Assembly (NCBI RefSeq): GCF_016433145.1
Contig: NC_058132.1
Location: 87,133,860 to 87,197,859, forward strand
DNA length: 64,000 nucleotides
Direction of reading: 5' to 3'
Origin: Gracilinanus agilis
Lineage: Eukaryota
In this document: piece after piece, positions 1-58,984 of the stretch
Layout of the letters: every line of letters begins with the position of its first letter
Position numbering within the stretch: position 1 is the first letter of the stretch
Notes under the pieces: generated by a model
The model's database searches: none
The model's input: the letters and a program-made list of their open reading frames with translations, nothing else
Told to the model about the DNA's origin: nothing
Position numbers and translations under genes: made by a program

Positions 1-442
1 GCCCAGCCTTGGCGATGATGGGGTTGGTGAGGATAGTGGCATAGCGCAGGGGGTAGCAGATAGCCACGTAGCGGTCCAGCGCCATGAGCATGAGTACCCC
101 AGACTCCACCCCTGTGAACCCATGAACAAAGAACATTTGGGCTAGGCAGGCATCAAACTTGATCTCCTTTAAATTAAACCAGAAGATACTCAGGGCGTTG
201 GGGAGGGTAGTGGTACAGGTGAGGAGGTCGGTGAGGGAGAGCATTGCCAGGAAGAAGTACATCGGCTTGTGAAGGGACTCTTCATACTGGATGAGATACA
301 CAAGACCGAGGTTACCCACCAGAGATATGGCATACATAGCACAGAGAGGGAGAGAGATCCATAGATGGGCAGCTTCCAGGCCAGGAATGCCATTCAGGAT
401 GAAAGAGTCTGGGGCCACATAGGAACTGTTGAAAACTAGCAT
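1..442 (-). CDS. OR52N5: Class I olfactory receptor, OR52N family (OR52N5-like); first 147 codons, runs off the left edge
   Basis: Manual minus-strand translation from ATG at 442 has no stop: MLVFNSSYVAPDSFILNGIPGLEAAHLWISLPLC...LHKPMYFFLAMLS...FTGVESGVLMLMALDRYVAICYPLRY. It shows the N-terminal NxS sequon and the LHxPMY and MALDRYVAIC motifs. DLLTCTTTLPNAL matches human OR52N5 as I recall it; orthology is not tested. A pyrimidine-rich acceptor (minus-strand AG at 492-493) lies just upstream. Confidence 0.9.
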   Translation of the reverse strand, partial: MLVFNSSYVAPDSFILNGIPGLEAAHLWISLPLCAMYAISLVGNLGLVYLIQYEESLHKPMYFFLAMLSLTDLLTCTTTLPNALSIFWFNLKEIKFDACLAQMFFVHGFTGVESGVLMLMALDRYVAICYPLRYATILTNPIIAKAG

Positions 443-8203: not shown

Positions 8204-9169
8204 TCAGATGCTTTGAGAGGAAGCATCTTTTTTCTGAAAGAAGAATCTAATGACACAATTCCGAATCTGCTTGGTCTTTACCCCGTAGACGATGGGGTTC
8301 ATAGTGGGGGGCAGGAGCAAATAGAGATTGGCCATAATGATATGGATGTGTGGTGGTATGGTGTGGCCTCCAAAGCGGTGGGTGAAGAAGGTAAAGAAAG
8401 CTGGAACATAAGTGATGACGATGGCACAGAGGTGCGCCGTGCAGGTGCCAAAGGCCTTCTGCCGGGCGTCTGCGGATTTCAGGCTGACCACTGCTTTGAG
8501 GATCATGGTGTAGGAGACGGTGATACAGAGGATGTCAAAGCCCCCGATGAGAAGGGCAACCATCAGACCATACACGGCATTGACCTTTACGTTGCCGCAG
8601 GACACTTTGGCCACAGACATGTGGTCGCAGTAGGTGTGGGGGATGAGATTCCCCCGGCAGTAGGGCAGCCTCTTGGTGAGGAAAGCGAAGGGAATGACCA
8701 GCATGACGCCTCTCAGGAAGGTAAGGAGCCCAGCCTTGGCGATGACGGGCCTGGTGAGGATGGCACCATAGCGCAGTGGGAAGCAGATGGCCACGTAGCG
8801 GTCAAGGGCCATGAGCATGAGCATCCCGGACTCCATCCCCGTGAAAGTGTGGACAAAGAACATCTGAACCAAGCAGGCATTGAAGTCGATCTCCTTGAGG
8901 TTGAACCAAAAGATGAAGAGCGTGTTGGGCAGGGTGCTGGTGCACATCAGCACGTCTGTGAAGGACAGCATGGCCAGGAAGATGTACATGGGCCGATGCA
9001 GGGCTTCCTCCCCGTAGATGAGATACATGAGGCCAAAGTTCCCTGTGATGGCGATGACGTACATGGTGCAGAATGGGAGGGAGATCCATCCGTGCGCTGC
9101 TTCCAGCCCTGGAATGCCATTGAGGATGAACGAGCTTGGGGTCAAGCTGCTGGTATTTGGAACTGACAT
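8204..9169 (-). CDS. OR52N2: Intact class I olfactory receptor, OR52N2-like, 321 aa
   Basis: Single-exon ORF with the full OR motif set: NTS sequon, LHRPMY, MALDRYVAIC, HTYCDHMSVAKVSC, KAFGTC, PPTMNPIVYGVKTKQIR. It closely resembles human OR52N2 as I recall it; 1:1 orthology is not tested. Confidence 0.95.
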   Translation of the reverse strand: MSVPNTSSLTPSSFILNGIPGLEAAHGWISLPFCTMYVIAITGNFGLMYLIYGEEALHRPMYIFLAMLSFTDVLMCTSTLPNTLFIFWFNLKEIDFNACLVQMFFVHTFTGMESGMLMLMALDRYVAICFPLRYGAILTRPVIAKAGLLTFLRGVMLVIPFAFLTKRLPYCRGNLIPHTYCDHMSVAKVSCGNVKVNAVYGLMVALLIGGFDILCITVSYTMILKAVVSLKSADARQKAFGTCTAHLCAIVITYVPAFFTFFTHRFGGHTIPPHIHIIMANLYLLLPPTMNPIVYGVKTKQIRNCVIRFFFQKKDASSQSI

Positions 9170-9309: not shown

Positions 9310-12300
9310 TCAGTCAATAAACATTTATTAAGAATCTACTATGTGGCAGGCAATGTAATAAGATCTGAGGATACAGAAACAGGCAAAAGACTGTCTCTGT
9401 TCTCAAATAGCTCTCAGTCTAGTGAATGAGACAACATGCAAAGAAATATGCACAAACAAGTTATATGCAGGCTATATTGAATGAATGTATATTTTAAATA
9501 TAGCCTGCACATATCTTTATATTTTAATTCTAGTCCTTTCCTTCTATTGACTGTTTTTGAAAGTGAAGATAATACATAGAAGGAAAGCACTAAAATTAAG
9601 ATATATAGGATATATATGTATACATACATACATATATATAATATCTGATAAATTGAAGATAATCAATACAAGGAAAATATTGGAATTAAGAGGGGTAGGG
9701 ACAGGCTTCCTCTAGACCAGTGGTTCCCAAACTTTTTTGGCCTACCGCCCCCTTTCCTGAAAAAATATTACTTAGTGCCCTGGAAATTATGAAACTATTT
9801 ATTGAACTCAGAAGAGAATGTAATACAAAAAAAAGTGTGGCCATCACTGCCTCCCTAGATTGCTGCAGCACCCACCAGGGGGCGGTAGCACCCACTTTGG
9901 GAATCTGCTCTCTATGGTAGGATTTTGGCTGGGACTTGAAGGAAGCCAAAGAAGCCAGGAGATAACAGGAGAGAGAATCCCAGGCCTTTGGGACAGTCAG
10001 TTAAAATGCCCAGGGTAAGAGAATGAAGTGTTTTGTTTGAGGAACAGCAAGAAGGCCAGGTATAAGAACTTAAGAAGACAGGAAAGGCAGAGGGAAGACA
10101 AATTCTAAAATTTGAACTCCCAAGAGAAGATTTTATATTTGATCTTGGAGTTGATAGGGAGCCAGTGAAGTTTATTGAGAAGGGAATTGGCAGGGTTGAC
10201 CTGAGCTTTAGGAAAGTAATTTTTGGCAGCTGAATGGATGAGGAACTGGAGTGGGGAGAGACTTGGCAGAATCAATCAATAGGGCTGGTTATGTCAGAAG
10301 AGAGAAGAGTGTATAGAGAGAGATGTTACAAAAGGAAAATTGTCAGTCATTGGCAATAGGTTAGATGTGGCTAATGGGAAGGAGTGAGGAACAGAGGTAT
10401 GGAGGATGATACCTAGACTGAGATCCTTGGTGGCTAGTGAGTGATACACACATGCTGAAAATAGACATATGGGAGAATGGTAGAGCCTTTAACATTAATA
10501 GGGAAGTTAGGAAGAAGAGGGGGTTTGTTGGGAGAGAAATGAGTTCAGATTTGGACGTTTTGAGTTCAAGATGTCTAAGGGACACCCATTTTGAGATGAA
10601 AGGCAGTTGGAGAAAGAAAGAGGTCAGCAGAGAGATGATTACTAGAATCTACAATTGCCAATCATTAGCTTGGAGGTAATAGATAAATCTGTGGGAGTCA
10701 GTGAAATCATCAAGTGAAATAATGTGAAGAGGGGAAGCAAATAGATCCCAGAACAAAGTCCTGTGTGGAAACCAAAGGTTGGTAGGTATGGCCTGGATGA
10801 AGATTCAGCAAAGGACATTAAAAGGGGGTTAGTCAGAAAAAAAGAAAACGACAAAAAACCACCCCAATTGTTGAGTATGTTGGCTTTGTTGCTCACTCTT
10901 CTTTTCTCTTTTTGAAATATATGAAGTTATTCTTTTTTCTGTCTTTTTTCTTTTGTAAACTTTTTGTTTTGTTTAAAATGGCTTTATAAAAGGGTTTACC
11001 TTCTTTCTTGGAATGGATACTAAGAATTGGTTTCAAGATGGAAGAGAAGTAAGGGCTAGGCAATGGAGATGAGTGACTTGCCTCCCCCCCCCCAAAAAAA
11101 AAGGATTCGTTAGAAGTAGGAGGAGAATGAAGAGACAGTAATGTCATGAGAACTTAGAGAGAAGATGGTTTCAAGGAGAAGAAGAAGCTTTCAGCAAATG
11201 GTCTCTTTTTTTCCCAGTAAAATTTGAAAAATTGAAAAATAATTCCTCAGGTTTGGAGGAAGGATGAAAAGATTTGGAATTGCTGCTGTGGTGGTGGGTT
11301 AGTGAGTTAATTAGGGAAGGGTAAAATAATTACTTTGCAGCAATGAGGGCCCAGATGAAATTATAAAACATAAATTTATTATGACCCTGTTTGTTTTGAC
11401 TCAAATTTGTTATAACCCAATCAGCAGTTTCTTGATTTTTCTCCAGCTTTGTTGTTCAGTCATTTCAGTCCAGTTTGACTCTTTCTGACCACATCTGAAA
11501 TTTTCTTAGCAAAAATATTGGAGTGGTTTGCCATTTCCTTCTCCTACTCATTTTACAGATTAGGAAACTGAGGCAAACAGTGACTTTCTTAGGGTCACAC
11601 AGCTAATTTCTCCATGTATAATAGAGATGACTGCTGATGGAGGAAGGGATCCAAGGCTGAGACTTTGAAGAAAATCAGCAATAAAATAAGAGGTCAAGGG
11701 TCTCAAGAGAGAAGAAGAAAGTGTAAAGTTGAACTGGTTCATCAAAGGGGCAAGATGAGAAAGGGAGAAAAAATGTAGCCAGTGGACTGTGGCCTGAGAA
11801 AGAACTGAGGAGTGGAGGGATTCAAGTCCAAAGCATGGAGGAAGAGTGTTTGGATTTGCAACTTAGAGGGATAGATGGAATGGCAATGCATTATAATTGG
11901 ATAAGGGGATTTTCTGAGTTCTTAAACATTTGTAGGAGATGGTAAGATCCCTCTCAGTCATCTCTGTAACAGAGATAGAGTGGAGGCTTAGGTCCTGTAA
12001 AATGAGAAATGATTTATGAGATTGGGATGTTGAAGGAGTATCAGTATGAAAGTTGAAGCCAATCCCTAGTGTTGGGTCAAGAGTGGAGAAGGAAAAAAAT
12101 ACTGTGAGCAAGGAATCAAAGACATTGAAGAAAGGGGGGTGTAGTTAGGGGTCATGAGGTATCAGAATTTTGATTGGGTGGTAGATAAGGATTAAGTGAA
12201 CCTCAGAGGAGAAGTTAGAATAAGGGTAGTAGAGAGAGAATCAGGAATTCTCAGGAAGGAGCAAGGAATATTTCAATTCATCTCCCTTGACCAGGAGAAT

Positions 12301-21039: not shown

Positions 21040-21700
21040 AACATTTCATTTCCAGTAGAAAAAGCCATTCACTTTTCTAAAAAAGGGGGATGGAAAGGAT
21101 GAAAATTGATCAATTCTTCCTTCTCTCTATCATCAGTAGATTCATTGATCCATTTGCCCCAGGTGAAGTTTCTATCCATCTTTTGATCCCCATTTCTCCT
21201 GATGTATCTTAAAAAAGGGGGGGAGGGTGGCATTTTGTTGTCCTTAGCTTCCCTTGATAATTCAAGTGATTCTGAGTTTTAGCATTTTTAACACTAATTC
21301 TTATAGGACTATATCATGTTGTTATATTCATCTTCTATTTTGGGGCTGCTTCCATTTTCTATCCATAAAATAAAATTAATGTTGAGTGAGTTTCCTATGC
21401 ATCCATATTCATTTCTTTGGAGGATTCCCCATTTTTGTCCTTATCAGAATTGTTTCTCTGGATTTCGTCACCCATCTCTTCTAGAATGACATCCCCTGAA
21501 GCATCTATTCCAAGGAATATTATGTTTCTTTCCTCTGAAGCAATGGAAATCTATTTTTATGATATTCTTTTTATTTCTCCTGGATAGGATATGAATGAAG
21601 TAGTGACACTAGAATGAAGTAGTGACATTCCTCCAAAAGTTCTATCATTCTGATCCAGTAACAAGTTACTTTTTCTTAGTGATAAACCCTTGCCTTCTGT
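21040..21700 (-). mobile_element. Ancient CR1/L3-like fragment, paralogous to 45560-46520
   Basis: agtagaaaaagccattcacttttctaaaaaaggggg (21054) aligns with agtggaaaaacctttcaactttccaaaaagggg (46329), offset 25275. Confidence 0.5.
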
Positions 21701-22767
21701 CTTAGAATCAATGCTGTGTATTGGTTCCAAGGGAGAGGAACATTAAGGTCTAGACAAATGGGGTTAAGTGACTTGCCCAGGGTTGCACAGCTAAGAAATA
21801 TCAGAGTACAGATTTGAACCCAGGACCTCTAGGTCTTTAGCGCTATCTCCCAATCCACCGAGCTCCCTAGCTGTCCCTCAAAGACATTATTTTTGGTATT
21901 TGTTAGGTCTAGTCTAAGTCTGGTCAGAAATCTGATATCTATATTATAAGATGTGATCTAGAAATCCAAATTTCGTTCAGAGACAAAACCTTCTCAGCCA
22001 ACCATTCACTTCTTAGATAATAAATCAGATCAATAAAAATTCATTAAGAGCCAGCAGGGCTATTCTAAGCTTTCTTGCTGTTGCCTTTTTAGTATTGTAT
22101 CATCTCCCTGTGAGTCACTTTTGTGCTGGAGAACTTCATTTTGGGTTATAATGGTTCCTCTACAAAGATCTTCAGGTTTTTATAGGAGCTTAAACTCAAA
22201 GGGAGGGTACAGTTTTTGTTTTTGTTTTTCTTTAGCAAGCTATTCATTTAATGTTCCTATACTGTGAAGAGGCTCAGACTTAGCATCAGAGTGTTAATGA
22301 GTCAATGGATTTACTAAATATTTAATACTCAAGTAATCTGTTTTGAAAGACTATAGAACTCTGATAAAGGAATGATAAATTCTAAAAAAAGAAAGAAGAA
22401 ATTGATCCAAAATTCCATGTTTCTTTCAATGTCATAAAAGTTGAACCAAAAAATTTTAAAAAGTTATACTCTCATAAACCCCCCCAGGAAATGAATCTCT
22501 TCAAATAAACTCAGAATCAGGTCAGAGATTAAACTACATGTAGAGGATTCACAAGTTAATAAGGAGGAGGATTTCCAAGTCATCCAAGAGTCAAGGACTG
22601 GAGATTCTTCTTATCTCAGGAAAGTTTAAGGCCCAAAGTAAATTTTCACTTCTCACAGGGGTTATCCTAAAGGAAACCAGACTTTTAGATAAGCAAAATT
22701 TGCCTGAGGAGTGACTGAGTTCTAAGTAAGGAAAGAAAATGTGAAATTTCCTTCACACAGGACACCT

Positions 22768-22807
22768 TTTACCAAGAGTGTTTCCTTTGCTCCTCACAGC
22801 ACCCCCA

Positions 22808-22838
<31 letters not shown>

Positions 22839-23753
22839 ATAGGAGTTTGGGGCTCCCCCAGCTGCTCTGAGAGGGTGAGGCCCGCCCCCTCACTGGAACC
22901 TTCCCTGCCTCCCTAGTACTGTCAGGCCCCAAGAAGAAGCCCTCCCCTCCGGCTCCCACCCGCCTCTGCAATCTCCTCTGCAGGCTCTTCCAAGGTCAGA
23001 AGCCAGTCCCAGGAGGGCAGAAAGTTCCCTGGGCTGCCCTGGCTGGGGCTCGGGCCTAGGTGGAGACGCTTGCTTTGATTGTATCAAACAATCAGGAGTG
23101 ATTGTGAACCAGGCTGGCCCTCCCCCTCGCCCCCCCCCCCCATCAATCAGAGCCCTGGGCTGGAGCCTGGGTCCCGCCCTCTGCACTTGCTATAAAAGGG
23201 AGAAGCTGCCTCAGTTCAGTTGCATGAAGCCCTGGTGAGGAGTCCCAGAGGCTGCTGAGGCCTCCAGAGGAAGGAGCCCGAGTCCCAGGAAGAGGAGGAG
23301 GGCCCAGGCGGGGATCCAGGCGGCCACAGAGCCTCCAGGAAAGGTCAGCCCCTCCCCCTCCCTCTCCCCTCCTTTTCCCTGCCGCCCCTCCCCCACCCCC
23401 AGAGGCCTGTCTGTCAGCAGAGCTTGGATGGAATCTGCTGGAGTGACTCCAGTCCAGTGAGAGTGAGGGGCTGGCGGGGGTTCGAGGAGGAGGGGAGCCC
23501 CAGAGCCCCTGCTGGGGCCTCGGGACTTTCCCTGAGGCCCCTGTGGGAGGCCACTTGGAGCTTTTCCCCGAAGCCCAGGCCCTGCAGGCCCCGCAGGGAG
23601 CTCTCCCCTCCCCCTCTGGGGTTTGTCTCTCAGCATTTCAGCTCCCTGAGGGCAGGGAGGGTCCGGCCTGCTGTGGCTCTGAGGAGCTGCGTGCGGGGGC
23701 CGGCCTGGAGCTGGCCTGGGGGACGCCCCACCCGGGACCTTCCACACTGGCCC
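22768..23753 (+). promoter_or_regulatory. GC-rich promoter, exon 1 and start of intron 1 of TRIM gene A; near-identical to 48050-49040
   Basis: (GCAG)7 repeat, TGATTGTATCAAACAATCA at 23076-23094, GC box CCCGCCC at 23173-23179, TATAAAA at 23191-23197, Inr-like TCAGTT at 23211 and 23216, donor AAG|GTCAGC at 23343/23344. Confidence 0.8.
23218..23343 (+). other. Inferred non-coding exon 1 of TRIM gene A, containing a uORF (MKPW*, 23224-23238)
   Basis: Starts about 27 nt after the TATA box and ends at a GT donor; the next exon opens with GAAC then the RING start ATG. The TSS is approximate. Confidence 0.6.
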
Positions 23754-26899: not shown

Positions 26900-27090
26900 G
26901 GGCCAGAGCTTATAATTAAGTAAAGGAGAACAGGGGCTCCTGTCTGTATGGACCAGGGCTCATAATTAAGGAGTAAAAAGGTTCCTATCCGTGTGGACCA
27001 GGGCTCATAATTAAGGAGAAAAAGGGGTCCTATCTGTGTGGACCAGGGCTCATACTTAAGGAGAAAAAGGGGTCGTATCCTTATGGATCC
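26900..27090 (+). repeat. 45-bp minisatellite, about 4 copies, three with TAATTA
   Basis: Units start at 26900 (50 nt, diverged), 26950, 26995 and 27040; consensus GGACCAGGGCTCATAATTAAGGAGAAAAAGGGGTCCTATCYGTGT. Confidence 0.9.
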
Positions 27091-27442
27091 TGAGTTAATG
27101 GTAGAAAGGAAATGTGGTGGTGGATGGAGACAGGAGATTGCACCTTCCTCTTCCCAGGCATGCCATGACAAAAGACCCTTGGCTAGAAGTAAGGAGGTGG
27201 AGTCCTCAGGGCTCTGCACTCTTTTTGTGAATCCATCACCTTTGATCTCTAAATAGATAGCAAGTTTGTGGTCTACATTTTCTGACCTACCTAGCAAATA
27301 CTTTGGAACAGCTGTTCAGACAGGGAGAGATGTGCCCAGGCCTTCTGGAGAGGGAAAGATGCGGATGACTCTCCTCCCAAGTGGGATACAGCAATGACTC
27401 ATTCTCGGGATGTTTCTCTCCTGGCTTCTCTTTTCCAGGAAC

Positions 27443-27856
27443 ATGGATGCTGTCACCCTGGTCCGGAGTCTCCAGCAGGAGACCACCTGCAGCATCTGTC
27501 TGACGTTCTTCACGAAGCCCGTCACCCTCAACTGTGGCCACAGCTTTTGCCAGTTTTGTCTGACCAAGGACAGGGACGCGGAGGCCAAGCAAGTGTCTTG
27601 CCCCGAATGCAGGGAAGTGTCCCAGAACTTCCCCGGCCTCAATGTGCCCCTGTCAAAGCTGGCTGCTGTCTGCAAGAGCCTCAACTCGGAGAACCTGGAG
27701 AACCCCGTGGGACAAGCCCGCTGTCAAAAGCACCAGCAGGTCCCCAAGCTCTTCTGTGAGGAGGACCAGACCTCCATCTGCGTGGCTTGTACCGAAGCTC
27801 AGGAGCACGGCACTCACACCCTTTCCCCCATCGAGGAGGCGGCTCAGAACTGCAGG
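27443..27856 (+). CDS. TRIM gene A coding exon 1: RING (C3HC4) and B-box 2
   Basis: Acceptor ctcttttccag|GAACATG, donor AGG|GTGAGT; 414 nt. RING ligands C16/C19/C31/H33/C36/C39/C53/C56; B-box ligands C94/H97/C105/D108/C113/C116/H122/H125. Confidence 0.95.
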
Positions 27857-28471
27857 GTGAGTAACGGGGGCAGCCTGGATGCCTTCCAACTCCTGGAAAG
27901 GAGCTCAAGGCCTCTCGGCCAGGGTCACACAGCTATGAAGTGAGCCCTTTGCCTCCTTCTTCAAAGGGATATTGAATGAGATTTACCCAAATGTCGTGAA
28001 GAGAAGGTAGTGGCTAAAAATCTTAAAAAGAGACTAGGCTCACATTTAAAGGAAACCGAGGATTCTATTTGGGGGAGCAAGTAGCCCCCTTCTATTTCTC
28101 TCCTTTGGTGTTAAACTTGTGAACTTCACAATTGAATCTGTGTCTTCCAAAATACTGGAAATGCCCCTTTAATAATAACCCCACACCAAATAATTATAGA
28201 CCCACAGGCCATTTTCTTTTGTGAATCTCATGCGATCTAAGATATCCCTTAATATCTCTCACTCCTTGGGGGTAGCTCAGTGGATTGAGAGCCAGGCCTA
28301 GAGACGGGAGGTCCTAGGTTCAAATCCGGCCTCAGACACTTCCCAGCTGTGTGACCCTGGGCAAGTCACTTGACCCCCATTGCCCACCCTTACCACTCTT
28401 CCACAGAGCTAATACACAGATGTTAAGGTTTAAAGAAAAAAAATATATCTCTCACCCCTTTTCCCTTGCAG

Positions 28472-28549
28472 GAGAAACTCCAGGACTCTGTTCCTCATTT
28501 GAGAAAGAAGATGAAGGAATTGAAGGAGCTTACTGCTTCAAAGAAAAAT
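28472..28549 (+). CDS. TRIM gene A coding exon 2: coiled-coil start (EKLQDSVPHLRKKMKELKELTASKKN)
   Basis: cccttgcag| acceptor, AAT|GTAAGT donor; 78 nt, phase 0-0; homologous exon at 55762-55839. Confidence 0.85.
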
Positions 28550-29126: not shown

Positions 29127-29354
29127 AGAATAATTCAGTGGAGAAAGTTGGTTAGAGGAGAATATTCAAGAATGCACCTGTACCTGTATGAGGAGGAGAG
29201 AAGATGCTTGGACAGAGTAAAACATGATGAATGGAGGTCTTTCCAGCTAAAGGAAAAGTACTATAATGTAATAAATCAACATGTAAAAAACCTAGAAGAT
29301 ACTCTCCGAGAGATAGACGAAACAAGGCACAGACCTGATTTAGACCTGCTGGAG
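29127..29354 (+). CDS. TRIM gene A coding exon 3: coiled coil (RIIQWRKLVRGEYSRMHLYLYEEE...RHRPDLDLLE)
   Basis: ccctacag| acceptor, GAG|GTGAGA donor; 228 nt, open frame. Confidence 0.9.
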
Positions 29355-30612: not shown

Positions 30613-30710
30613 GAGTGAGTTGCAGCTTTCCGAAAGGCCCAAGTCTTTCACTCCAGAGTTAAGAGACTATCCTATCACTGGGGTGAAGGCCATGTTACAG
30701 AAATTAAAAG
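30613..30710 (+). CDS. TRIM gene A coding exon 5: linker 2 (SELQLSERPKSFTPELRDYPITGVKAMLQKLK)
   Basis: cttccgtgcag| acceptor, AAAG|GTAAGA donor; 98 nt, phase 2 to 1. Confidence 0.9.
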
Positions 30711-31383: not shown

Positions 31384-33010
31384 AAAAACAAGAATTGTAT
31401 TTCAGTCGATATGAATTTTTTATACTCTTACATCTGTTGAAGTCTGTACAAAGCAAAGCATTCCTGCTTTTTAAAATTTCCAAGGGGGCAGCTGGGTAGC
31501 TCAGTGGATTGAGAGCCAGGCCTAGAGTTCAAATCTGGCCTCAGACACTTCCCAGCTGTGTGACCCTGGGCAAGTCACTTGACCCCCATTGCCTAGCCCT
31601 TGTCACTCTTCTGTGGTATTGACTCCAAGACAGAAGGTTAAAAAAAAATTGCATTATGACAAACATAAAAAGAAACAACATTGTTACTAAAAGTCACCAA
31701 TTTACTTTCATGATAAAACAGTGTCATGATTTTAAAAACCAAAATTTCAAATCCAGGAGACCCCTCCCTCCCTTTGGAAATATAAGGAAAGTTAGAAAAT
31801 GTGTGAATTTGTTCCTTCTGTGGCAGTGGGTATGTCTCCTGGAGTTGGACCTTCTTTCTTAATAACAACTCTAAGGGCAAGGGCTAGGCAAATGGGATTA
31901 AGTGACTTTCCCAGGGTCACACAGCTTGGAAATGTTTGGGGCAAATTTGAACCCAGGTGTTCCTGACTGCAGCCTCTATATATTGAGCTACCTAGCTGCC
32001 CTCTTTTTTTTTTTTTTTTTAAACCTTTACTTTCCATCTTAGAATTGATACTGAGTATTGGTTTCAAGGCAAGAAGAATGGTAAGGGATAGGCAATTAAG
32101 GTTAAGTAACTTGCCCAGCAAGGTCACACAGTTAGGAAGTGTCTGGGATCAAATTTGAACCCAGGATCTCCCATCTCTAGGCTTTGCTCTCTATCCACTG
32201 AACCAACTAGCTGTTTCTCTACATTCATTCTTGATTTTCTGTTGCTAATTATAGGTTGTTGCCCCACTCTTAGGGATAATGCAGTTCTTTATCCACATTT
32301 TAATGGCTATCCTAGTTAGCCTGACCAGTGGAGTCTGGAATTCTATGAGAATCATCATGATTCTGACATTTTAAAAAACTGACTTGCCTAGATGAACCCA
32401 GAAACTAGTGACTGTCAGGCTACCTTAAAAGTGGAAAGAAGAGTACTAGAAGAATAAACTGAGAAAGTTACCTCTAGAAAATGAATAGAAAGATAAAACA
32501 TGAAGCATGTTGGCCTCCAGGATGATATCCTATGTGATGTGGGAAGAGGTTGGGACACTCACTAGTGGACAGGATTTATTCATTAGATATGAAGAAAAGT
32601 AAGTTAAATATGTAGGAGATCTGTGATTTCATATTTAGAATTTTTCTTTTATATATTGACATTCTTGTTTTTGTTTGGATTTATAAACATTTGAAATAAT
32701 TTTAAAAATTTAAATAGAAAAAAAGGTAGAAAATGGAAAAATCAAGAAATGTTCATTCAATTAACCTGCTCCAGAATCGGTTTCTACACCAGACCACTAG
32801 TGATTATATCAGTGCTTGGTGGAAGGGAATTTTTGTTTCGAAAAAGACTTAGAGATGATAGACATCCCTTTGGGAAAGGGATTACTCAATCCTCTAAGGA
32901 GCCAAGGATTTGGTGCAGACTGGGCTGTGCTCTTGCCAAGTCCTAGCAACCGAAGAAAGGCTTGCACGCCTCTCAGGACAATTAACTTTTCCCCTCTCTC
33001 GTCTCTGCAG

Positions 33011-33558
33011 TGAATGTCACGATCGATCCCACAACAGCCAGTCCCAATTTCGTCGTTTCTGATGATTTGAAGAGTGTGAGATACGGAGACGACCCTCCAG
33101 ATCAGTCCAAAAGTGCTGAAAAGGCTCCTTATAATTTTGTCCTTGGCCAGCAGGGGTTCAGCACCGGCATACACTACTGGGAGGTGGATGTGAGTGAGCA
33201 ACCTCAGTGGGCGCTGGGGATCTCGGTCAAGTGTTTCAGGAAGAGGAAGTCGATCCAGTACACGGTTGGGTATCTGTACATGCTTCGCTGTGAGAAGAGG
33301 GGAAATGAGTTCTACCTGGTCGCCCGACCAGGGTTAGTTTGCCAGAAAATGAAAGGCCCTGTGCCTGTCATTGGTGTGTATCTGAATTGTAACGACAGAA
33401 TTCTCCTGTTCTATAATGCTTTCAAAGCCTGCCTCATCTATGGAATGCACACGGTGCCATTCAAAGAGCCCGTCAGGCCTCTCTTCTCCCCTTGTCCCCC
33501 GATGCCAGCTACAAAAGTTGGTTCCATGACCATCTGTCCAATGGAAAATAGTATTTGA
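33011..33558 (+). CDS. TRIM gene A last coding exon: PRY-SPRY (B30.2); assembled CDS 1389 nt, 462 aa
   Basis: tctctgcag|TG AAT GTC; motifs xDPxTA, VLGxQxFSTGxHYWEVDV, IGVYLNC, PVRPLF; TGA at 33556-33558. All six exons join in frame. Confidence 0.95.
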
Positions 33559-38191: not shown

Positions 38192-38625
38192 CTCTAGTCT
38201 TATCCTTCTCTTGAATATCAAAATGATCTTAAAACACACTCCCCTATTCAATATAGTCCAATGGATCTTTATTATCTTTGTTTTCCAGCCATTTTAGTCA
38301 TGCCCCATTCTTTGTGGTCCAATTTGGTATGTTCTTGGCAAAGTTAAGTGGTTTGCCATTTCTAACTCCAGTTCATTTTTACAGATAAAGAAACTGAGGC
38401 AACCAGGATTAAATGACTTGCCCAGGATCACACAACTAATACATGTCTGAGGCCAGATTTGAATTTGAGTCTTCCTGACTCCAGGACCAGCAATCTGTCT
38501 ACTCTGTCACTCAACTGCCCATATTATCTCTAGAATCACATATAAAATTCTGTTTGTCTTTTAATGTTATTCATATTACTGCCCCTTTCCTATCTTTTTA
38601 TGCTTTGTGTAACATAATTCAATGN

Positions 38626-38718
38626 TCCTTCCTTCCTTCCTTCCTTTCTTCCCTCTTTCCTTCCTTCCTTCCTTCCTTCCTTCCTTCCTTCCTTCCTTCC
38701 TTCCTTCCTTCCTTCCCT
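38626..38718. repeat. (TTCC)n microsatellite, preceded by a single N at 38625
   Basis: Read directly; it explains the GRKE-repeat ORFs at 38576-38830. Confidence 0.95.
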
Positions 38719-40876
38719 CCCGGTCGGTCTTAGAATTGCTACTAAATATTGGTTCCAAGACAGAAGAGCAGTAGAGGTTGGGCAATTGGGGATTAAGTGA
38801 CTTGCCCTGGGCAATGCAGCTAGGAAGCATCTGAGGTCAGATTTGTTGTTGACATTTTCTATACCTCTTTCTTAAATCTAGTCCAGACGTGTCAGACACA
38901 TTGCTCATTTGGCCTGCAATATTCCCAACCACAATCTGAAGTAATACCTGACACAAGCTTACAACGAAGTGTACCCCAACACCCATTTCCCTTTCTTGTT
39001 CGAGGAATACCCTGGCTCCAGGCTGTGGAGTTTTTCCTGGCACAGCTGCAGCAGGAGCCCCAAGCCCATCACACTAGCACTGCAAAGCCTTGAACTTCCT
39101 GTGCCAGGATGGGCAACCTTGTAGCACTTGCAGAGTCAGTGTTAGGGCAGCCAACCGGGTGGCATTAGCAATAGCACCAATGCTGAAAAGCACTGAACTA
39201 TAACTGCCGGCCAAAGGACCAAGGAATACAGGAAGCAAGGTAGGACACAAGGACAGACCTCCTTGTATGTGGGGTCTGTGAAACACTCCACTAAGCCTGG
39301 GGTCAAGAGCGTGGTGGGGGGAAATTTTATTGCATTGTTGGAAACTAACCCTGTATGTAGAGAAACTAGACCTGTTGTTGCTTAAAGACCAAATTTGTGT
39401 AGTGCTTAGCTCACAACTCCCGATTATCCTGACCCCAAAAAGAACCTTCCAGGGGACCCCAAGACCAAGAATGTGTCTTAAATGGAAAAGGCCATTGTAC
39501 TACAATCTTCTTGTTCCTTTGTTTGAATCCTTTATAATATGCAATCTGCAGAACTCTGGGGGAGCAGGGCACTCTTTTTCTTTTTTAAAATTTTCCTTCA
39601 CCAAATAAATGGCTTAATAAATTTTATTTCTAAATTATTTCATTTCTGGACTTTATTCTTGGTTGTGATAAATACATGAGGAGAAATATCTATAGACTAC
39701 TAAAGGAAGCCCATTCAGAAAAGGATTTAAAATATAAAATGCAACTGATTATTCTGATACTACCTACTTCAGGATTTCAGTGAGAGAAGTGTTTTGCAGA
39801 CCTGAAATTTCACAAGAGTGGGAGCTATTATTTCTTCCTTTGGGAACCCTGGCCAGGCAGTTATCCAATCTGTATCTCAGTTTTCTGTTCTTTAAATGGT
39901 GGATAATAACTAAAACCGTTAGTGCCTTCATCATAGGCTCAAATGTGATAGGACAGAAGTAACACCCTTACCAAAACATAGAACCTCATTTTATATCAGA
40001 TAATTTTGTTATTGTTCACTGGGATTAATGGACATATGATCCAGAAAGGCATATTACACAATAGTCTTGTATTATCCTCTCATTTTGCAAATGAAGGAGT
40101 TTAAGAGAAGAAAGTTTATCCATTTTGCAAAGGCAGGAATTTATAGAGCTAGATAATAACTCTGATCTGATTTCAAAGCCCAGACAATTTCTGTGACACT
40201 GTGGTGCCATCCTTTAGTGATAAAATTATGAAAAATTAAATGATCTCCTTGTATCATACTCTCATTTTGCAAATAGAGGAATTTAAGAGAAGAAAGTAAA
40301 TTTGTTACAAGTCACAAAGATAAGAATTTACAGAGCTAGACAGGAACTCTGATCTGATTCCAAAGCCCAGGCAATTTTTGACACTGTGGTGCCTTTCCTT
40401 AGTGATAAAGTTATGAAAACCTGGGTTTTGATTCCTAGTAATTTTTCCTTAATACCTGCTCTCCTGTTGAAATTGTCTTCTGATTCTTTCACTTTAAGTT
40501 AGTCCAGGATAGTCATTTTTTGTTAACATTTTGTTCCTGTCCTCAGATTCCAATCCTTTTGTAAGTGCTGCCCTTTCCCCCGTTCTCACCTAGAACATAT
40601 ATGGGGTCAAGAAGACCCAGAGATTGATTGAAACAACTGAATAACAAGAGAACACAGATATCAGTCTTTTTCTCATCTCTTTAGAGGTATCTTTCTGTCT
40701 CCTTCTTTGTCCTGGCTCGTTTTCTACCCAGAGAAAAGGGCCATATGTGAGATTTCTCCCAAATATGTTTTTCTTTTATGTAGGAACCACTTTCATTTTT
40801 TTCATCTCATTTTCAGATTCCTTAGTCTTATTTCAGAGAAATGGCAATATTTATATTTTGTCTTCACCTCTTTTAG

Positions 40877-45100: not shown

Positions 45101-45559
45101 CACTTTTGGGGCACAAATAAGAATCTGCTTTTGGATAGAAGCATTGATGAAGGGTATCAGCTTTTGTCTACTGGACTTTCCTTTTAGAGAAACACTCAGC
45201 ATCCTGGCCTTGAAGGCTGGAGTTTACACCTGAGATCAAGCCTCAGACACTCACTAGTTATGATGTTTTCCAGCCTTAGTTTGGGAAATAATTACACCTG
45301 CCTTCCAGGACTGCTGTGAGGATCAAATTAAATAATTAATGTAAAGGATTTTAGATGTGGGGATAGAATGTAGTAGGTACTTAAATGCTTATTTCCTTTT
45401 TTTTTCTTCTGTTCTCACTATTGATTCATACTGACCTTGAGTTCCATTAAAAACTGATATCTAGCCTATCATGCACCCCCCCCCCTTTTTATATTTCTGG
45501 AAGTGGTTTATTTATTCAAATCCCTATCTATTGAATTTCATTTTTAGATTCATCTGAAA

Positions 45560-46520
45560 GGTCCAGGTTGTAAAAATCCTCTTAGATTCCCCCTCTTTCA
45601 TCTACTTTCTTAGTGATCCTTCCCGGCTTAGTATCTTCTGAAAAATTTTATGAACATTAACATTTATGAAATTTTCAGAGTTATTGATAAATTTACAACA
45701 GAACCTATTATTGATCAAGGAGAACTCTTGACACAATGACACGGAAAAATTTCTAAATAATGGCCATCTAACCAGACTCTGAATCAATCTGCTATTATCA
45801 GCTAATTCATATCTCCCCATTTTCTCCCTAAGAATAGTATGAAAATTTTTATTAAACACAGATCTAAAATATAAATAAATTATCCACTGTATTCTTCTCA
45901 TCTACTACTTGAATAAAACCATTTATGAAAAGAAATGAGGTTAGTCTTCACTAAATAATAACTTGTTCTTAATAAAACTGGGGTGTTTATTTGAAATTGC
46001 CAACCAATTAACCAATAAAGAACTCTTTCAAAAATTTTCCCCAGGAATTGAAGTCAAGCTTACTTGGACATTTCTTTGCATACCTGTTCTCTTCCCTTTT
46101 TGAGAATCTGGACATTTGCCCTTCTGTAATCTTGTGGCACCCTTCCAGTTTTTCATGAGTTTTCAAATATCATTGACTATGATTTTACAATCACAATTTT
46201 AGGGAGAAAACACACAGTTCATTCAGGTCAAGTAACTTGATTTTACCTAGAGCATCTAAATGTTCTCTATAATTGAATTACTTTCTCTTGTTCTAAATTC
46301 CATTAGTCATTTTTGTTATTTCATTTTTAGTGGAAAAACCTTTCAACTTTCCAAAAAGGGGTGGGGCAGGGCAAAATAAGAATTGAGCAGCTCTGCCATT
46401 TCTATTACCAGTTATTAGTCTTAGCTTATTCTGTTAGGGAAACTATCCCTTTTTGATCCTCCCCTTTCTCTAAATAGAGCTTAAAAATCCCTTTTTTGTT
46501 GCTGCAGTTTCCCCTCATGA
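45560..46520 (-). mobile_element. CR1/L3 LINE reverse-transcriptase remnant
   Basis: ORF 45602-45901 (IIYLYFRSVFNKNFHTILREKMGRY...SVSLCQEFSL...FINNSE...) resembles the CR1 RT motif series (IYLDFSKAFD...SGVPQGS...FINDL...KFADD). Confidence 0.65.
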
Positions 46521-47399: not shown

Positions 47400-47752
47400 T
47401 ATCTGTCTATCCATCTGTCTGTTTCTCTCTCTCTCTATACATATATCTATCTATCTATCCATCTGAGAAAGAGATAGAAACAGAAAGACAGATGGATAGA
47501 TAGATGATAGATAGATAGAAAGACAGATGATGGACAGATAGAAATATAGATTGATAGTAGAAAGATAGACANNNNNNNNNNNNNNNNNNNNNNNNNNNNN
47601 NNNNNNNNNNNNNNNNNNNNNNNNNNNNNNNNNNNNNNNNNNNNNNNNNNNNNNNNNNNNNNNNNNNNNNNNNNNNNNNNNNNNNNNNNNNNNNNNNNNN
47701 NNNNNNNNNNNNNNNNNNNNNNNNNNNNNNNNNNNNNNNNNNNNNNNNNNNN
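47400..47752. repeat. GATA/GACA-type tetranucleotide repeat running into a 181-nt assembly gap (N 47572-47752)
   Basis: Read directly from the sequence. Confidence 0.9.
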
Positions 47753-48049: not shown

Positions 48050-48089
48050 TTTACCAAGAGTGTTTCCTTTGCTCCTCACAGCACCCCCA

Positions 48090-48124
<35 letters not shown>

Positions 48125-49040
48125 ATAGGAGTTTGGGGCTCCCCCAGCTGCTCTGAGAGGGTGAGGCCCGCCCCCTCACTGGAACCTTCCCTGCCTCCCT
48201 AGTACTGTCAGGCCCCAAGAAGAAGCCCTCCCCTCCGGCTCCCACCCGCCTCTGCAATCTCCTCTGCAGGCTCTTCCAAGGTCAGAAGCCAGTCCCAGGA
48301 GGGCAGAAAGTTCCCTGGGCTGCCCTGGCTGGGGCTCGGGCCTAGGTGGAGACGCTTGCTTTGATTGTATCAAACAATCAGGAGTGATTGTGAACCAGGC
48401 TGGCCCTCCCCCTCGCCCCCCCCCCCCATCAATCAGAGCCCTGGGCTGGAGCCTGGGTCCCGCCCTCTGCACTTGCTATAAAAGGGAGAAGCTGCCTCAG
48501 TTCAGTTGCATGAAGCCCTGGTGAGGAGTCCCAGAGGCTGCTGAGGCCTCCAGAGGAAGGAGCCCGAGTCCCAGGAAGAGGAGGAGGGCCCAGGCGGGGA
48601 TCCAGGCGGCCACAGAGCCTCCAGGAAAGGTCAGCCCCTCCCCCTCCCTCTCCCCTCCTTTTCCCTGCCGCCCCTCCCCCACCCCCAGAGGCCTGTCTGT
48701 CAGCAGAGCTTGGATGGAATCTGCTGGAGTGACTCCAGTCCAGTGAGAGTGAGGGGCTGGCGGGGGTTCGAGGAGGAGGGGAGCCCCAGAGCCCCTGCTG
48801 GGGCCTCGGGACTTTCCCTGAGGCCCCTGTGGGAGGCCACTTGGAGCTTTTCCCCGAAGCCCAGGCCCTGCAGGCCCCGCAGGGAGCTCTCCCCTCCCCC
48901 TCTGGGGTTTGTCTCTCAGCATTTCAGCTCCCTGAGGGCAGGGAGGGTCCGGCCTGCTGTGGCTCTGAGGAGCTGCGTGCGGGGGGCCGGCCTGGAGCTG
49001 GCCAGGGGGACGCCCCACCCGGGACCATCCACACTGGCCC
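48050..49040 (+). promoter_or_regulatory. Promoter, exon 1 and start of intron 1 of TRIM gene B; near-identical to 22768-23753
   Basis: (GCAG)8, TGATTGTATCAAACAATCA at 48362-48380, TATAAAA at 48477-48483, donor at 48629/48630. Confidence 0.8.
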
Positions 49041-49571
49041 CTCTGAGCAGGGTTTTTCTTAACCTTGGCCTTCCGTTTTGGAATCAATTTTGTGTATTGG
49101 GCCTAGGCAGAAAGCGCTAAGGGCTGGGCAATGGGGGTTAAGTGACTCGCCCAGGGTCACACAGCTAGAAGGTATCTCAGGCCAGATTTGAACCTGGGAC
49201 TTCTTGTCTCTTACTCTCAATCCACTGAACCCTCCTTTTCCCCCCAATGGAGTCGTTTTAAACTGCGGACCATTCTTGAGGTAGTCTACACCTGAGCCAG
49301 CCCTTTGAGAGCCCAAAGCAGTTTCCTGGTATTTATTCCATTTTGATCTGTGCCTCTGTGAAACCTCTTAAAATAACATAAAGAAGGTAATTCAGTTCCT
49401 AGACTTGCATGGAGGGTCCTGGGGAAAGGCTTCCTGTAGTGCCCGCTGGGTGTGTCGGGTGTGAGGGCTCCCCCATCCCGAGACACACCCCGGAGAGGAT
49501 CCCCTGGGGGTCCCCGATGCCTTTGGAAATCAAATTGATCCTTTGTGGCTATTCTTGGGAGTTTGTTGAAT

Positions 49572-54056: not shown

Positions 54057-54654
54057 AAAAAGCCACAAATTTGACTTTTTGAATAGGTTCCACAGCAGAG
54101 TGGGAAGGGATAGGCCAAAGATAGGGACTGAAGGAGCCTTAGAAGGACAATACAAATGGCAAGAGTCTATTTGAAAGAGGGTAAAATTGCTTTTCCTGCA
54201 GTGGGAGATTTACCCAAGTGTACCTGGCCTCTACCAACATCTCTGGAAGCTGTAGAGAAGCATGTCCTCTCCAGCCCCGCTTACCATTATGGCTCCCAAT
54301 CCCTAGGACTAGTCTGACCAAGACCTGGGGGGGGTGGGAGGGGGGATTAGTGGCCTCAAATCTGTAAGTTTCTATAGGGAAGAAGTTTTCTACTTGTGCA
54401 AGGGATGAGAAGGGAGGTAGAATTATATGGTCGTTGCTGAATCAGTCCCCTTTGATATCTAAATAGCTAGTTATATACATTTTATGATCTACCTAGCAAA
54501 TACTTTGGAACAGCGATTCAAATAGTGAAAGATGTAGCCCTCTGGCATATGTATGTCTTCTGAAGAGGGAAAGAACGTGGATGACTCCACTGCAAGCAGG
54601 ATAAATTAATTAATTCTCAGGATGTTTCTCTAACTGCCTCTCTTTTCCAGGAAC

Positions 54655-55068
54655 ATGGATCCTGTCACCTTGGTCCAGAGTCTCCAGCAGGAGACCACTT
54701 GTGGCATCTGTCTGACATTCTTCACAAAGCCCGTCACCCTCAACTGTGGCCACAATTTTTGCCAGTTTTGTCTGAGCAGAAGCAAGGAAGCTGGGGTCAC
54801 ACATTTCTCTTGTCCTGAATGCAGGGAAGTCTGCCAGAACTTCCCTGGCCTCAATGTGCGCCTATCAAAACTGGCTGCCATCTGCAAGAAGCTCAGTGCT
54901 CAGAACCTACAGAATCCTGTGGGACAACGCTGCTGCCAGGAGCACCAGCAGGTCCCTAAGGTCTTCTGTAAGGAGGACCAGACCTCCCTCTGTATAACCT
55001 GTACCGAAACTCAGGAGCATGAGACCCACACTCTTTCCCCCATTGATGAGGCTGCTCAGAACTGCAGG
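54655..55068 (+). CDS. TRIM gene B coding exon 1: RING and B-box 2
   Basis: tcttttccag|GAACATG, AGG|GTGAGT; 414 nt; all zinc ligands retained; 105 of 138 aa identical to gene A by manual count. Confidence 0.95.
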
Positions 55069-55761
55069 GTGAGTAAGATGGGCAGAGGAAGGTTTTAAGA
55101 CTTTGATCCCTCCTTGAGACTTCAAAGGCTATCCAACCTCACCATGGAAGGCAGCAGCAGTGAACAAGAGTAAAAGGTCCTTGGACTGGAAATCAGGAGA
55201 TCAGAGTCCTCAGGGGCATAGCTATGTGCTTTACGGATAATGAGCCTAATGATGATCTAAATAGATCTAAAGAGATATTAAGCTTCTTGTATACAAAATA
55301 AAAGGCCTGAAATGAAATAAAATTCATATCTTTCTTGTTCCTGGTTGGGGTTTCCCTGGGCCACCTTTCTTTTCTATTCCTCCAAATATATGTATCTCTT
55401 TACCCCCTTCTTCTAAGGAATATTGGATAAGACTCTCAAAGTTTTATAAAGAGAAAGTTGTAGCTAAAAATCTTGTAAAGAGACTAGATTCACATTTAAA
55501 GGAAACCCAAGATTGTCACCACAACTTAATACCTAGTGTCAATTTTATTTCTTTCACTTCTTTTTTCCCTTTGGTACTAAACAATTTGAATTCTAATCTG
55601 TTTTCCAACTCATTGGAAATGTCCCTTTAATAATAACGCCACCCCAAATAATTATAGACCCACAGGCCATTTTCTTTTTTGAATTTCATTCAAGCTGCCC
55701 ATCTAAGACCAAATGTTAAGCTATCCTTTAGTATCTCTCTCATTCATTTGTCCCATTGCAG

Positions 55762-55839
55762 GAGAAACTCCTGGACACTATGCCCAGTTTGAGAAAGAAG
55801 ATCAAGGAACTGAAGGAACTTAACGTTTCAAAGAAGGAT
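55762..55839 (+). CDS. TRIM gene B coding exon 2 (EKLLDTMPSLRKKIKELKELNVSKKD)
   Basis: cccattgcag| ... GAT|GTAAGT; 78 nt. Confidence 0.85.
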
Positions 55840-56451
55840 GTAAGTGTCTAGCCCTGTCTTCTAATTGCCAACCTGCCTTAGGAATCTATGAAGATGGAAT
55901 CATCCCTAAATCAATCAGTCAAATGTCATTCATTATATCTTATTTATTTGAGACATCCAATTCCAGAGCAAATCACAAGACTTTATAGGGATAGGAAAAA
56001 GCATATGTGCAAAACAAATTATAATAAGTCAATTTAAAATGAATGCAAATTTAAATAGTTTGTGTGTTATATATGTACATATAAACACACAAGTGTATGA
56101 ATATATTTTTACACATATCCATATGCCTGAGGGAATGAGAAAAAAATAAGATGAGCTCAATGAGGTTAGTTTCCTGAGCATTTTAGGGGAGAAAGCATGG
56201 TGATATGGCAGAGAGAAGGCAATAATAACCATTCGGGTGACAGTGACATCAGCCGAGCCCTTTAGAGAAGGAAATTAGAAGATGTGCTAGAAGTGTGTTT
56301 CTGCAAAGGTGTTTGCTTGCTTGAGGAAGACACTAGGCAGCCATCTATTGGTAGCAGCAAAGAAAATTAAGACTTTGAGACCTGGAAATTTGGTGGGGAC
56401 AGAGAATATACCAACTTTTGGATGTCACTTAATAAGGCTCTTTCCCTACAG

Positions 56452-56679
56452 AGAGAAGTGAAGTGGAGAAAGCTGATTAGAGGAGAATATGCAAGAATGC
56501 ACCAGTTTCTGAAAGAGGAAGAACACAGATGCCTCGATGTGGTGACGAATGATGAAGTCATGACTAACCAGTTAATGGATAGCTACTACAATGAAATGCA
56601 CCAGCATTTTAAAAACATGGAAGATACTGTCCGAGAGATGGAGGAGACAAGGAGCAGACCTGATTTGGAGCTCCTTCAG
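56452..56679 (+). CDS. TRIM gene B coding exon 3: coiled coil (REVKWRKLIRGEYARMHQFLKEEE...RSRPDLELLQ)
   Basis: ttccctacag| ... CAG|GTGAGG; 228 nt. Confidence 0.9.
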
Positions 56680-57165: not shown

Positions 57166-57269
57166 GTAAGATTCCATTTGTGGTCCATTTGGGATCTGGT
57201 GTGTCATGGTTGGTGGGTATGGGGCTTATATAGAGCAGGAAGAATAACTGGAACTTTTATTTGGTGTAG

Positions 57270-57367
57270 ATGTGAATCAATGCTTTCTGAAAGGCCGAAG
57301 TCTTTTATCCCAGAGCTAAGAGAATATCCTGTTGTTGGGATGAAGGACATGTTAAAGAAATTCAGAG
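57270..57367 (+). CDS. TRIM gene B coding exon 5 (CESMLSERPKSFIPELREYPVVGMKDMLKKFR)
   Basis: ttttatttggtgtag| ... AGAG|GTAAGA; 98 nt. Confidence 0.9.
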
Positions 57368-58421
57368 GTAAGAAACTATCCTTTGTCATTGAGTCTGCCT
57401 ATGGGATTTTCCATGGCTAAATGTGTAGAAGCCTCATGCTAAATTCCAACCTCCTTCACAGGAATAAAAGTTAGTTCTGGGCAACTGGTCTCTGGAAAAG
57501 GAAAAATAGTATAGTGGGTTGGGGGAGTCTACTTTTCCCTGGTTGGTGGGGAGAGGTGCAAGGGAATCAACTCTTTACCCTTCATCCGCACTTTGGGTCA
57601 TCCACTAAATCTAGACAATCACGTGGCCACCCACCATTCCTAAGGACCCATTTCCCAGGGCACTTATTACAATCTGGAAGAAACTGTATTATGAGTGGTT
57701 GGACTGCCTTCTAGGCTATCTCTGAACCTTTTCTCTCTTCCAGACCCCCAAATTGTACACATTCCAGGACTAGGTATTCCTCTGTATTTTACATTATATG
57801 AACTTGATTATCCATGCTGATTATAGATCACTGCCTGTGTTCTTGGACTCTAAAAGATCATGACATTTGCTTATGAACATTTTAGACCAGCAGACTACTA
57901 GAATTCTATGAGAACCTATTTTTCTGTTTTAAAAAAATGAGTTGCCCAGATGAACCCCAAAACTGGTGACTGTCCAGACCACATGAAGAGTGGAAGGAAA
58001 GAGGGGAACAGCTAGGTGGGGGCATTAGGTCTGGCATCTATAGAGGATGTGGGTTCAAACCTGTGACCTTGGGCAGGTTACTTAACCCCATTTTGCCCTT
58101 CTGTCTTGTTTCTAAGACAGAAAGGAAGGTTTTTTGTTTTTGTTTTTAAAAGAAAGTAGAAAGAAGAAAATGGAAGAGCCAAGAAATGGCCATTCTGTTA
58201 GGCTGCTCCAGAGTAGATTTCTACACCAAGCTACCAGCAATTGCCTCAGTGCTAGCCCTGGCAGAGGGGAGGCTAATTTAGATTTGGAAATGTTAGACAT
58301 TCCTCTGGGAAAGGGGATGCTTAAGCCTATGAGGAGTAAGGACGAGGTGCATTCTGGGCTGTGCTCTTGCACTTTGCATCCTGCCTCTGAGGTCATTTAA
58401 CTTTTCCCCTTCTCTCTGCAG

Positions 58422-58984
58422 TGAATGTCACTATGGATCCTACAGCAACCAATTCCTGTTTTGTTGTATCTGAAAATATGAAGAGTGTAAGACTTAGAAA
58501 CAACTATCTGGATCAGCCAGACTGTGTGGATAAAGCTCATCATTTTATCCTTGGTCAGCCAGCATTCAGCTCTGGTGCATACTACTGGGAGGTAGATGTG
58601 AGTGAGCAACCTCAGTGGGCACTGGGGATCTCTGTCAAGTGTCTCAAAAAGAGAAAGACGATCCAGTACACAGCTGGTTATCTGTACATGCTTCGCTGTG
58701 AGAAGAGGGGAAATGAGTTCTACTTGGTCACCCGACCAGGGTTAGTTTGCCAGCTAATGAAAGTTCCTGTGCCCGTAGTTGGCATCTATCTAGATTGTAA
58801 TGAACGAACTCTCCTGTTCTATAATGCTGCCAAAGCGTCTCTGATCTACGAAATGCACATTATGCCATTCAAAGAGCCTGTCAGGCCTCTCTTCTGTCCT
58901 TGTCCCCCAATGTCAGGAACAAAGATAGGTGCAATGACCATCTGTCCAGTGAAATGTAATATTTGTGGCAATGCCTGTCTGTGA
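58422..58984 (+). CDS. TRIM gene B last coding exon: PRY-SPRY; assembled CDS 1404 nt, 467 aa
   Basis: tctctgcag|TG AAT GTC; ILGQPAFSSGAYYWEVDV, VGIYLDC, PVRPLF; stop at 58982-58984; all exons in frame. Confidence 0.95.

Follow-up and report, generated by a model that had tools for sequence, protein, structure and literature searches.

A near-identical ~1-kb segment 5' of two diverged tandem TRIM genes in the opossum Gracilinanus agilis, probably homogenised by ectopic gene conversion

Tandem paralogs commonly undergo gene conversion, and the human fetal globin genes HBG1 and HBG2 provide the classic ectopic case, in which the tract is bounded by simple sequence. A block of ~1 kb that lies 5' of two tandem TRIM genes, here called A and B, in a 64,000-nucleotide stretch of the genome of the opossum Gracilinanus agilis (hereafter the window, to which all coordinates refer) resembles such tracts in several respects. 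It is near-identical and sharp-edged within an older and diverged duplication, its two copies share a chromosome and are separated by tens of kb, and simple-sequence runs lie at or near its edges. However, unlike the known ectopic conversion tracts, the opossum block apparently contains no coding sequence, its immediate flanks are without detectable homology and its identity has not been independently assembled.

A second comparison is offered by the mouse V1R paralogs, where stretches exceeding 500 bp that surround the transcription starts resemble each other more than expected, and for which gene conversion was proposed as the cause and equal access to transcription factors as a possible benefit (PMC1955453). 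The V1R genes form a large family from which each neuron chooses a single receptor, and they were analysed with mapped transcription starts and ortholog comparisons, whereas the opossum pair comprises two genes that are described here from sequence alone.

Genes A and B are tandem TRIM ubiquitin-ligase genes (RING, B-box, coiled coil and PRY/SPRY), and both look intact. Pfam models place a RING and B-box in 27443-27943 and 54655-55098, a PRY/SPRY in 33010-33558 and a SPRY in 58421-58984. The TRIM order of RING, B-box and PRY/SPRY is thereby found in both genes above the curated cut-offs, with SPRY exceeding its cut-off in A and B and PRY in gene A only. Exons were located by comparing a bilby protein (P0019) with the window using tblastn, each exon being handled singly rather than within a joined spliced model. 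This gave five collinear coding pieces per gene, all on the + strand, with canonical splice signals visible at most ends and only an approximate start for the fourth piece. Exon 2 of gene A (27438-27856) begins at the acceptor CTCTTTTCCAG|GAAC, has its ATG at 27443, encodes the RING and B-box and ends at the donor AGG|gtgagt; exon 2 of gene B (54650-55068) has the same acceptor, with its ATG at 54655, and likewise encodes the RING and B-box. The other coding exons, whose ends are approximate since they are taken from tblastn, lie at 28466-28549, 29127-29354, 30614-30709 and 33010-33558 in gene A and at 55756-55848, 56452-56679, 57250-57366 and 58421-58984 in gene B, the last of each set carrying the PRY/SPRY and the stop codon.

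Apart from the block, the two genes are clearly diverged where they align. Exon 2 is 83% identical between A and B at the DNA level and 76% at the protein level (105 of 138 residues), in agreement with the RING/B-box identity of 76% given by the initial annotation of this DNA. Identity is 73-83% for the remaining exons, 78-82% for the alignable pieces of intron and 75% for the 3' region.

The best full-length relatives of these genes are marsupial proteins named TRIML1, which are 65-76% identical to P0019, and other matches to P0019 include human TRIM64 (33%) and TRIM21 (31%). The closest solved structures are those of TRIM72 and TRIM21, and a word search with the SPRY exon returned one distant match. 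RING, B-box and PRY/SPRY are common to genes A and B, the marsupial 'TRIML1-like' proteins, the eutherian TRIM64/TRIM43 type and TRIM39/TRIM21. The 'TRIML1-like' label is an automatic annotation and does not imply orthology of A or B to any named eutherian gene.

The block itself is present as copy A, 5' of gene A (22768-23753, + strand, 986 bp, GC 66%, CpG observed/expected 0.21), and copy B, 5' of gene B (48050-49040, + strand, 991 bp). The initial annotation had reported these as nearly identical stretches of 986 and 991 bp, and a fresh pairwise alignment over 991 columns recovered the same four differences, with 984 of 986 aligned bases identical. The complete set of differences is one 4-bp unit of an AGGC/GCAG repeat (7.5 copies in A and 8.5 in B as counted by TRF), a G5 versus a G6 run and two T/A substitutions. 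The (AGGC)n repeat lies 42 bp from the 5' edge of the block and the substitutions are 36 and 13 bp from its 3' end. It can be seen that all four differences fall no more than 75 bp from an edge, leaving an inner 856 bp that are identical, and clustering of this kind has a probability of ~5e-4 if differences are spread evenly. Since 984 of 986 bases agree across the block, the interior of which may be a collapsed consensus, against 73-83% in the rest of the genes, the block is ~100 times less diverged than its surroundings.

The copies are 25 kb apart (offset from A to B, 25282) and they occupy a collinear position in the two genes, ~3.5 kb 5' of the ATG exon in gene A and ~5.4 kb 5' of it in gene B. 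The GC content of the block stands at 66% against 40% for the window; it is not a CpG island since its CpG observed/expected ratio is only 0.21. No relatives of a 185-aa antisense open reading frame in the block were found, an exact look-up of nine open reading frames from the exons and the block matched no entry of the protein collection (0/9), and Rfam families gave no match anywhere in the window.

We considered whether the block could be a solo LTR or other young transposable element that inserted 5' of both genes, or a segment kept identical by purifying selection alone, as its sharp edges and the TATA box within it might suggest. It is very unlikely, however, that two insertions occurred independently at equivalent places. 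The block begins TTTACC and ends TGGCCC, so that the TG...CA termini of an LTR are lacking, there is no target-site duplication, and no third copy turned up when the 64-kb window was compared with itself by BLAST, whereas SINEs are abundant there; a solo LTR or other transposable element was rejected on these grounds. Purifying selection alone was also rejected, since it cannot preserve 986 consecutive bases, with a microsatellite and a C12 run among them, while the coding exons are at ~80%. Taken as a pair, these explanations are very improbable.

The age of the duplication was assessed from the coding part, which groups by paralog. The Monodelphis protein P0169 is 81-95% identical to gene B per exon (SPRY 91%, coiled coil 95%) and only 59-75% identical to gene A, and on sequence grounds its orthology to gene B is clear. 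Australian marsupial relatives are about equally distant from A and B. Since P0169 is far closer to B than to A, the A/B duplication predates the split of the two opossum lineages, and it follows from this age that the block was homogenised much later, in the Gracilinanus lineage.

We therefore favour a non-reciprocal homogenisation of ~1 kb, that is ectopic gene conversion, within an old TRIM duplication, and judging from the sequence we would give this reading a probability of roughly 0.68. An old duplication produced the two tandem TRIM genes, TRIML1-like by marsupial naming, and a collinear segment of ~1 kb would subsequently have been homogenised by homology-guided, non-reciprocal repair across 25 kb. 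The collinearity of the tract is seen in three offsets, 25282 for the block, 25275 for a unique match upstream of it and 25234 for an old SINE, as well as in the collinear downstream exons.

The degree of identity has to be read in the light of how the genome was assembled. The G. agilis assembly was produced from 2x100-bp stLFR linked reads using Supernova 2.1.1 and GapCloser; its contig N50 is 57 kb, its scaffold N50 683.52 Mb and its longest scaffold 801.37 Mb (PMC8390783). Barcodes cannot separate the block copies, which at a distance of 25 kb fall on the same long fragments, and read pairs are too short for ~1 kb, so only the outer ~100 bp of each copy can be assembled copy by copy. The inner 856 bp may represent a single consensus placed at each of the two sites. 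This would modify the conversion reading rather than replace it: the tract would be real, with two copies alike enough to be merged in a de Bruijn graph, and its identity overstated, the real divergence might approach the 1-3% found across the outer 75-100 bp (an identity of 97-99%), and the homogenisation could be older than it appears. We regard this as a serious possibility, at somewhat less than even odds. It is what linked 2x100-bp reads assembled with Supernova and GapCloser to a contig N50 of 57 kb could produce, and all four differences lie within a read length of unique flanks. However, the window carries no direct sign of collapse, and the same edge clustering would equally be left by repeated conversions with variable end points, in which case the differences may reflect edges that are eroding. 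The initial annotation had proposed a 'very recent' gene conversion; conversion stands as the best reading, given a collinear block between genes that are 73-83% identical elsewhere, whereas its recency depends on an interior that an assembly of 2x100-bp linked reads cannot resolve.

A more radical form of assembly error would be that the block truly exists at one site and was miswritten into the other. Copy B does begin 298 bp past a run of 181 N (47572-47752), as had been pointed out together with the worry that this gap might signal an error, and the assembly is a short-read one. That run, however, has a degenerate (AGAT)n microsatellite on both sides (47482-47571 on the 5' side) and lies off the edge of the block, and the only other N in the window, a single base at 38625, adjoins a (TCCT)n with (CT)n microsatellite (38625-38720). 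Since both N runs abut microsatellites, they fit gaps of short-read assembly rather than mis-joins, and with neither of them at a block edge the worry carries little weight. Sequence runs without a break across both junctions of either copy, each copy has its variants beside its own flank, and the copies are collinear in two independently intact genes. With four continuous junctions, copy-specific variants next to their own flanks and N runs away from the block edges, the two copies are taken to be real; an artefact of this kind is improbable, and we do not think that the block is absent from either of the two sites.

For ectopic gene conversion, homologous sequence would be expected directly at both ends of the tract, and the initial annotation had described both flanks as homologous if diverged. 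This description did not survive closer comparison. On the 5' side, 193-372 bp of the A flank scored no better than shuffled sequence against either the 297 bp of B after the gap or the 472 bp before it, and on the 3' side the immediate flanks of the two copies gave no direct alignment. At the 3' edge of copy B an old SINE (49053-49245, - strand) starts 13 bp past the block and has no counterpart at the equivalent site in A; its identity to the remaining copies of the window is 76-83%, compared with 95-96% among young copies. Just beyond this SINE the 3' flank of A aligns with B at a marginal score of 13 (shuffle mean 8.3, reached by 30 of 2000 shuffles, p ~0.02). The tract has sharp edges because homology ends there, with the SINE of B 13 bp past the block on the 3' side and unrelated sequence on the 5' side, and the SINE is the likely heterology that fixed the 3' edge.

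Collinear homology between the two genes is found farther out. Upstream it was detected only at least 0.9 kb beyond the block, as a unique, reciprocal match of 66% on the + strand between 21043-21215 (A) and 46318-46487 (B) and as the old SINE at matching places in both genes (21716 and 46950). The block offset is within 7 bp of that of the unique upstream match, and this match at almost the block offset shows that the sequence 5' of the block belongs to the old duplication unit. Downstream, A and B are homologous again from the intron that precedes exon 2 and in everything 3' of it. A further unique match of 66% (E ~5e-13) links the immediate 5' flank of A (22396-22574) with 62073-62243, 3' of gene B, and may be what is left of a third duplication unit; between 62073-62243 and the end of the window nothing block-like is present.

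Flanks that lack immediate homology are awkward for a purely homology-driven exchange, and gene conversion is inefficient between sequences that are only ~78% identical. From this inefficiency it follows either that the block was always similar, through recurrent conversion since the duplication, or that one junction formed without homology or the event was non-classical. In the latter vein, a break 5' of A could have been repaired once from the promoter region of B, with at least one non-homologous junction, so that A captured the promoter of B. The unalignable immediate flanks would be accounted for by such a templated copy. Judged against the MIR consensus, the 5' flank of B and the first ~40 bp of the block resemble what may be one MIR-type element, the left part of which is missing from A, and weak copies of it occur at 9323-9361 and 45312-45346 of the window. 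GC-rich sequence also runs on past the block in B (0.47-0.57), whereas in A it falls to 0.34-0.41 within ~200 bp. The continuity of the MIR-type element across the 5' junction of B is, however, weakly supported by the window copies, and a collinear landing with an offset within 7 bp of that of unique upstream homology would be hard to achieve without homology guidance. A one-off templated copy is accordingly held to be unlikely. Under the favoured gene conversion, the MIR-type lead and the GC continuation are hints in the sequence that B may have been the donor (B to A).

We next turn to what the homogenised segment may do. A conserved polypyrimidine tract followed by CAG|G, 5 nt 5' of the ATG, marks the start of the ATG exon in gene A as in gene B, and since this acceptor is conserved so close to the ATG, at least one non-coding exon must lie upstream. 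Motif matching within the block found a TATA box, CTATAAAAGGG, at 23190-23200 in copy A (+ strand) and the same sequence at 48476-48486 in copy B (+ strand), followed by a tandem initiator-like element, TCAGTTCAGTTGC, at 23211-23223 (+ strand) in copy A and 48497-48509 (+ strand) in copy B. The latter comprises two overlapping TCAGTT motifs on the gene strand whose A residues are 22 and 28 bp past the TATA box; in copy A the TATA is matched at 23191 and the initiator-like A at 23213 and 23219, a spacing read off the sequence. Transcription of gene A is predicted from these motifs to start near 23213-23219. A putative non-coding exon 1 of ~125 nt would occupy 23219-23343 (+ strand) and end at the candidate donor GAAAG|GTCAGC (23343|23344), with an upstream open reading frame of four codons at 23224-23238 (+ strand), and its counterpart in gene B would be 48505-48629 (+ strand). 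Relative to the predicted start, the block would then extend from about -450 to +535, taking in a TATA-driven RNA polymerase II promoter, the ~125-nt exon 1 and the beginning of intron 1. Given the conserved acceptor 5 nt before the ATG, and the TATA box, initiator-like motifs and donor within the block, the promoter and exon-1 identity that had been assigned to it is plausible.

Two further groups of motifs flank the predicted start. A cluster of four TGATTG/CAATCA motifs with the C12 run lies 45-115 bp 5' of the TATA box (23076-23149 and 48362-48435), and an NF-kB-type motif, GGGACTTTCC, occurs on the gene strand ~330 bp 3' of it (23522 and 48808). One could imagine, in line with the co-regulation proposed in the initial annotation, that the block is a cis-regulatory module held identical over long times by recurrent conversion under selection, with the two TRIML1/TRIM43/64-like genes firing together while their target-binding SPRY domains diverge, and the paired-homeodomain-like character of the CAATCA/TGATTG cluster would perhaps place this co-firing in the germ line or early embryo. 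We consider this selected form of the conversion reading rather unlikely.

If real, the homogenisation is a clear case of a change restricted to the presumed promoter and exon 1 in otherwise long-diverged TRIM genes of an immune or embryo type, and such cases bear on whether paralogs may retain common regulation as their proteins diversify. Were the module to be selected in addition, it would represent concerted evolution of regulation that is uncoupled from the coding sequence. One short-read assembly can neither date the homogenisation of the opossum block nor show selection, and the present value of the case is mainly that of a flagged locus. Overall, the block appears to be the product of an ordinary kind of event whose degree of identity the assembly measures poorly.

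The surroundings of the pair include an intact olfactory receptor gene resembling OR52N2 (8204-9169, - strand), which adjoins the TRIM genes, and a second receptor fragment at the start of the window (1-417). In eutherians, this neighbourhood carries TRIM6, TRIM34, TRIM5 and TRIM22. By sequence, genes A and B are TRIML1/TRIM64/TRIM39-like and not TRIM5-like: TRIM5, 6, 22 and 34 were all absent among the 79 matches at E<=1e-60, where the best eutherian names were TRIM64 and TRIM21, so that by sequence similarity the pair does not group with the eutherian TRIM6/34/5/22 cluster. Two papers report no marsupial orthologs of that cluster (PMC2151084, PMC10709114).

Within the genes, the 210 bp of intron directly 5' of exon 2 (27228-27437 in A and 54438-54649 in B) are 82% identical between the paralogs, so that this piece is conserved like a coding exon and above most other alignable non-coding pieces. 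Directly 5' of this conserved region, within what is presumably intron 1 of gene A, lies a tandem repeat at 26923-27087 made up of ~3.5 copies of a 45-bp unit with 84-87% matches.
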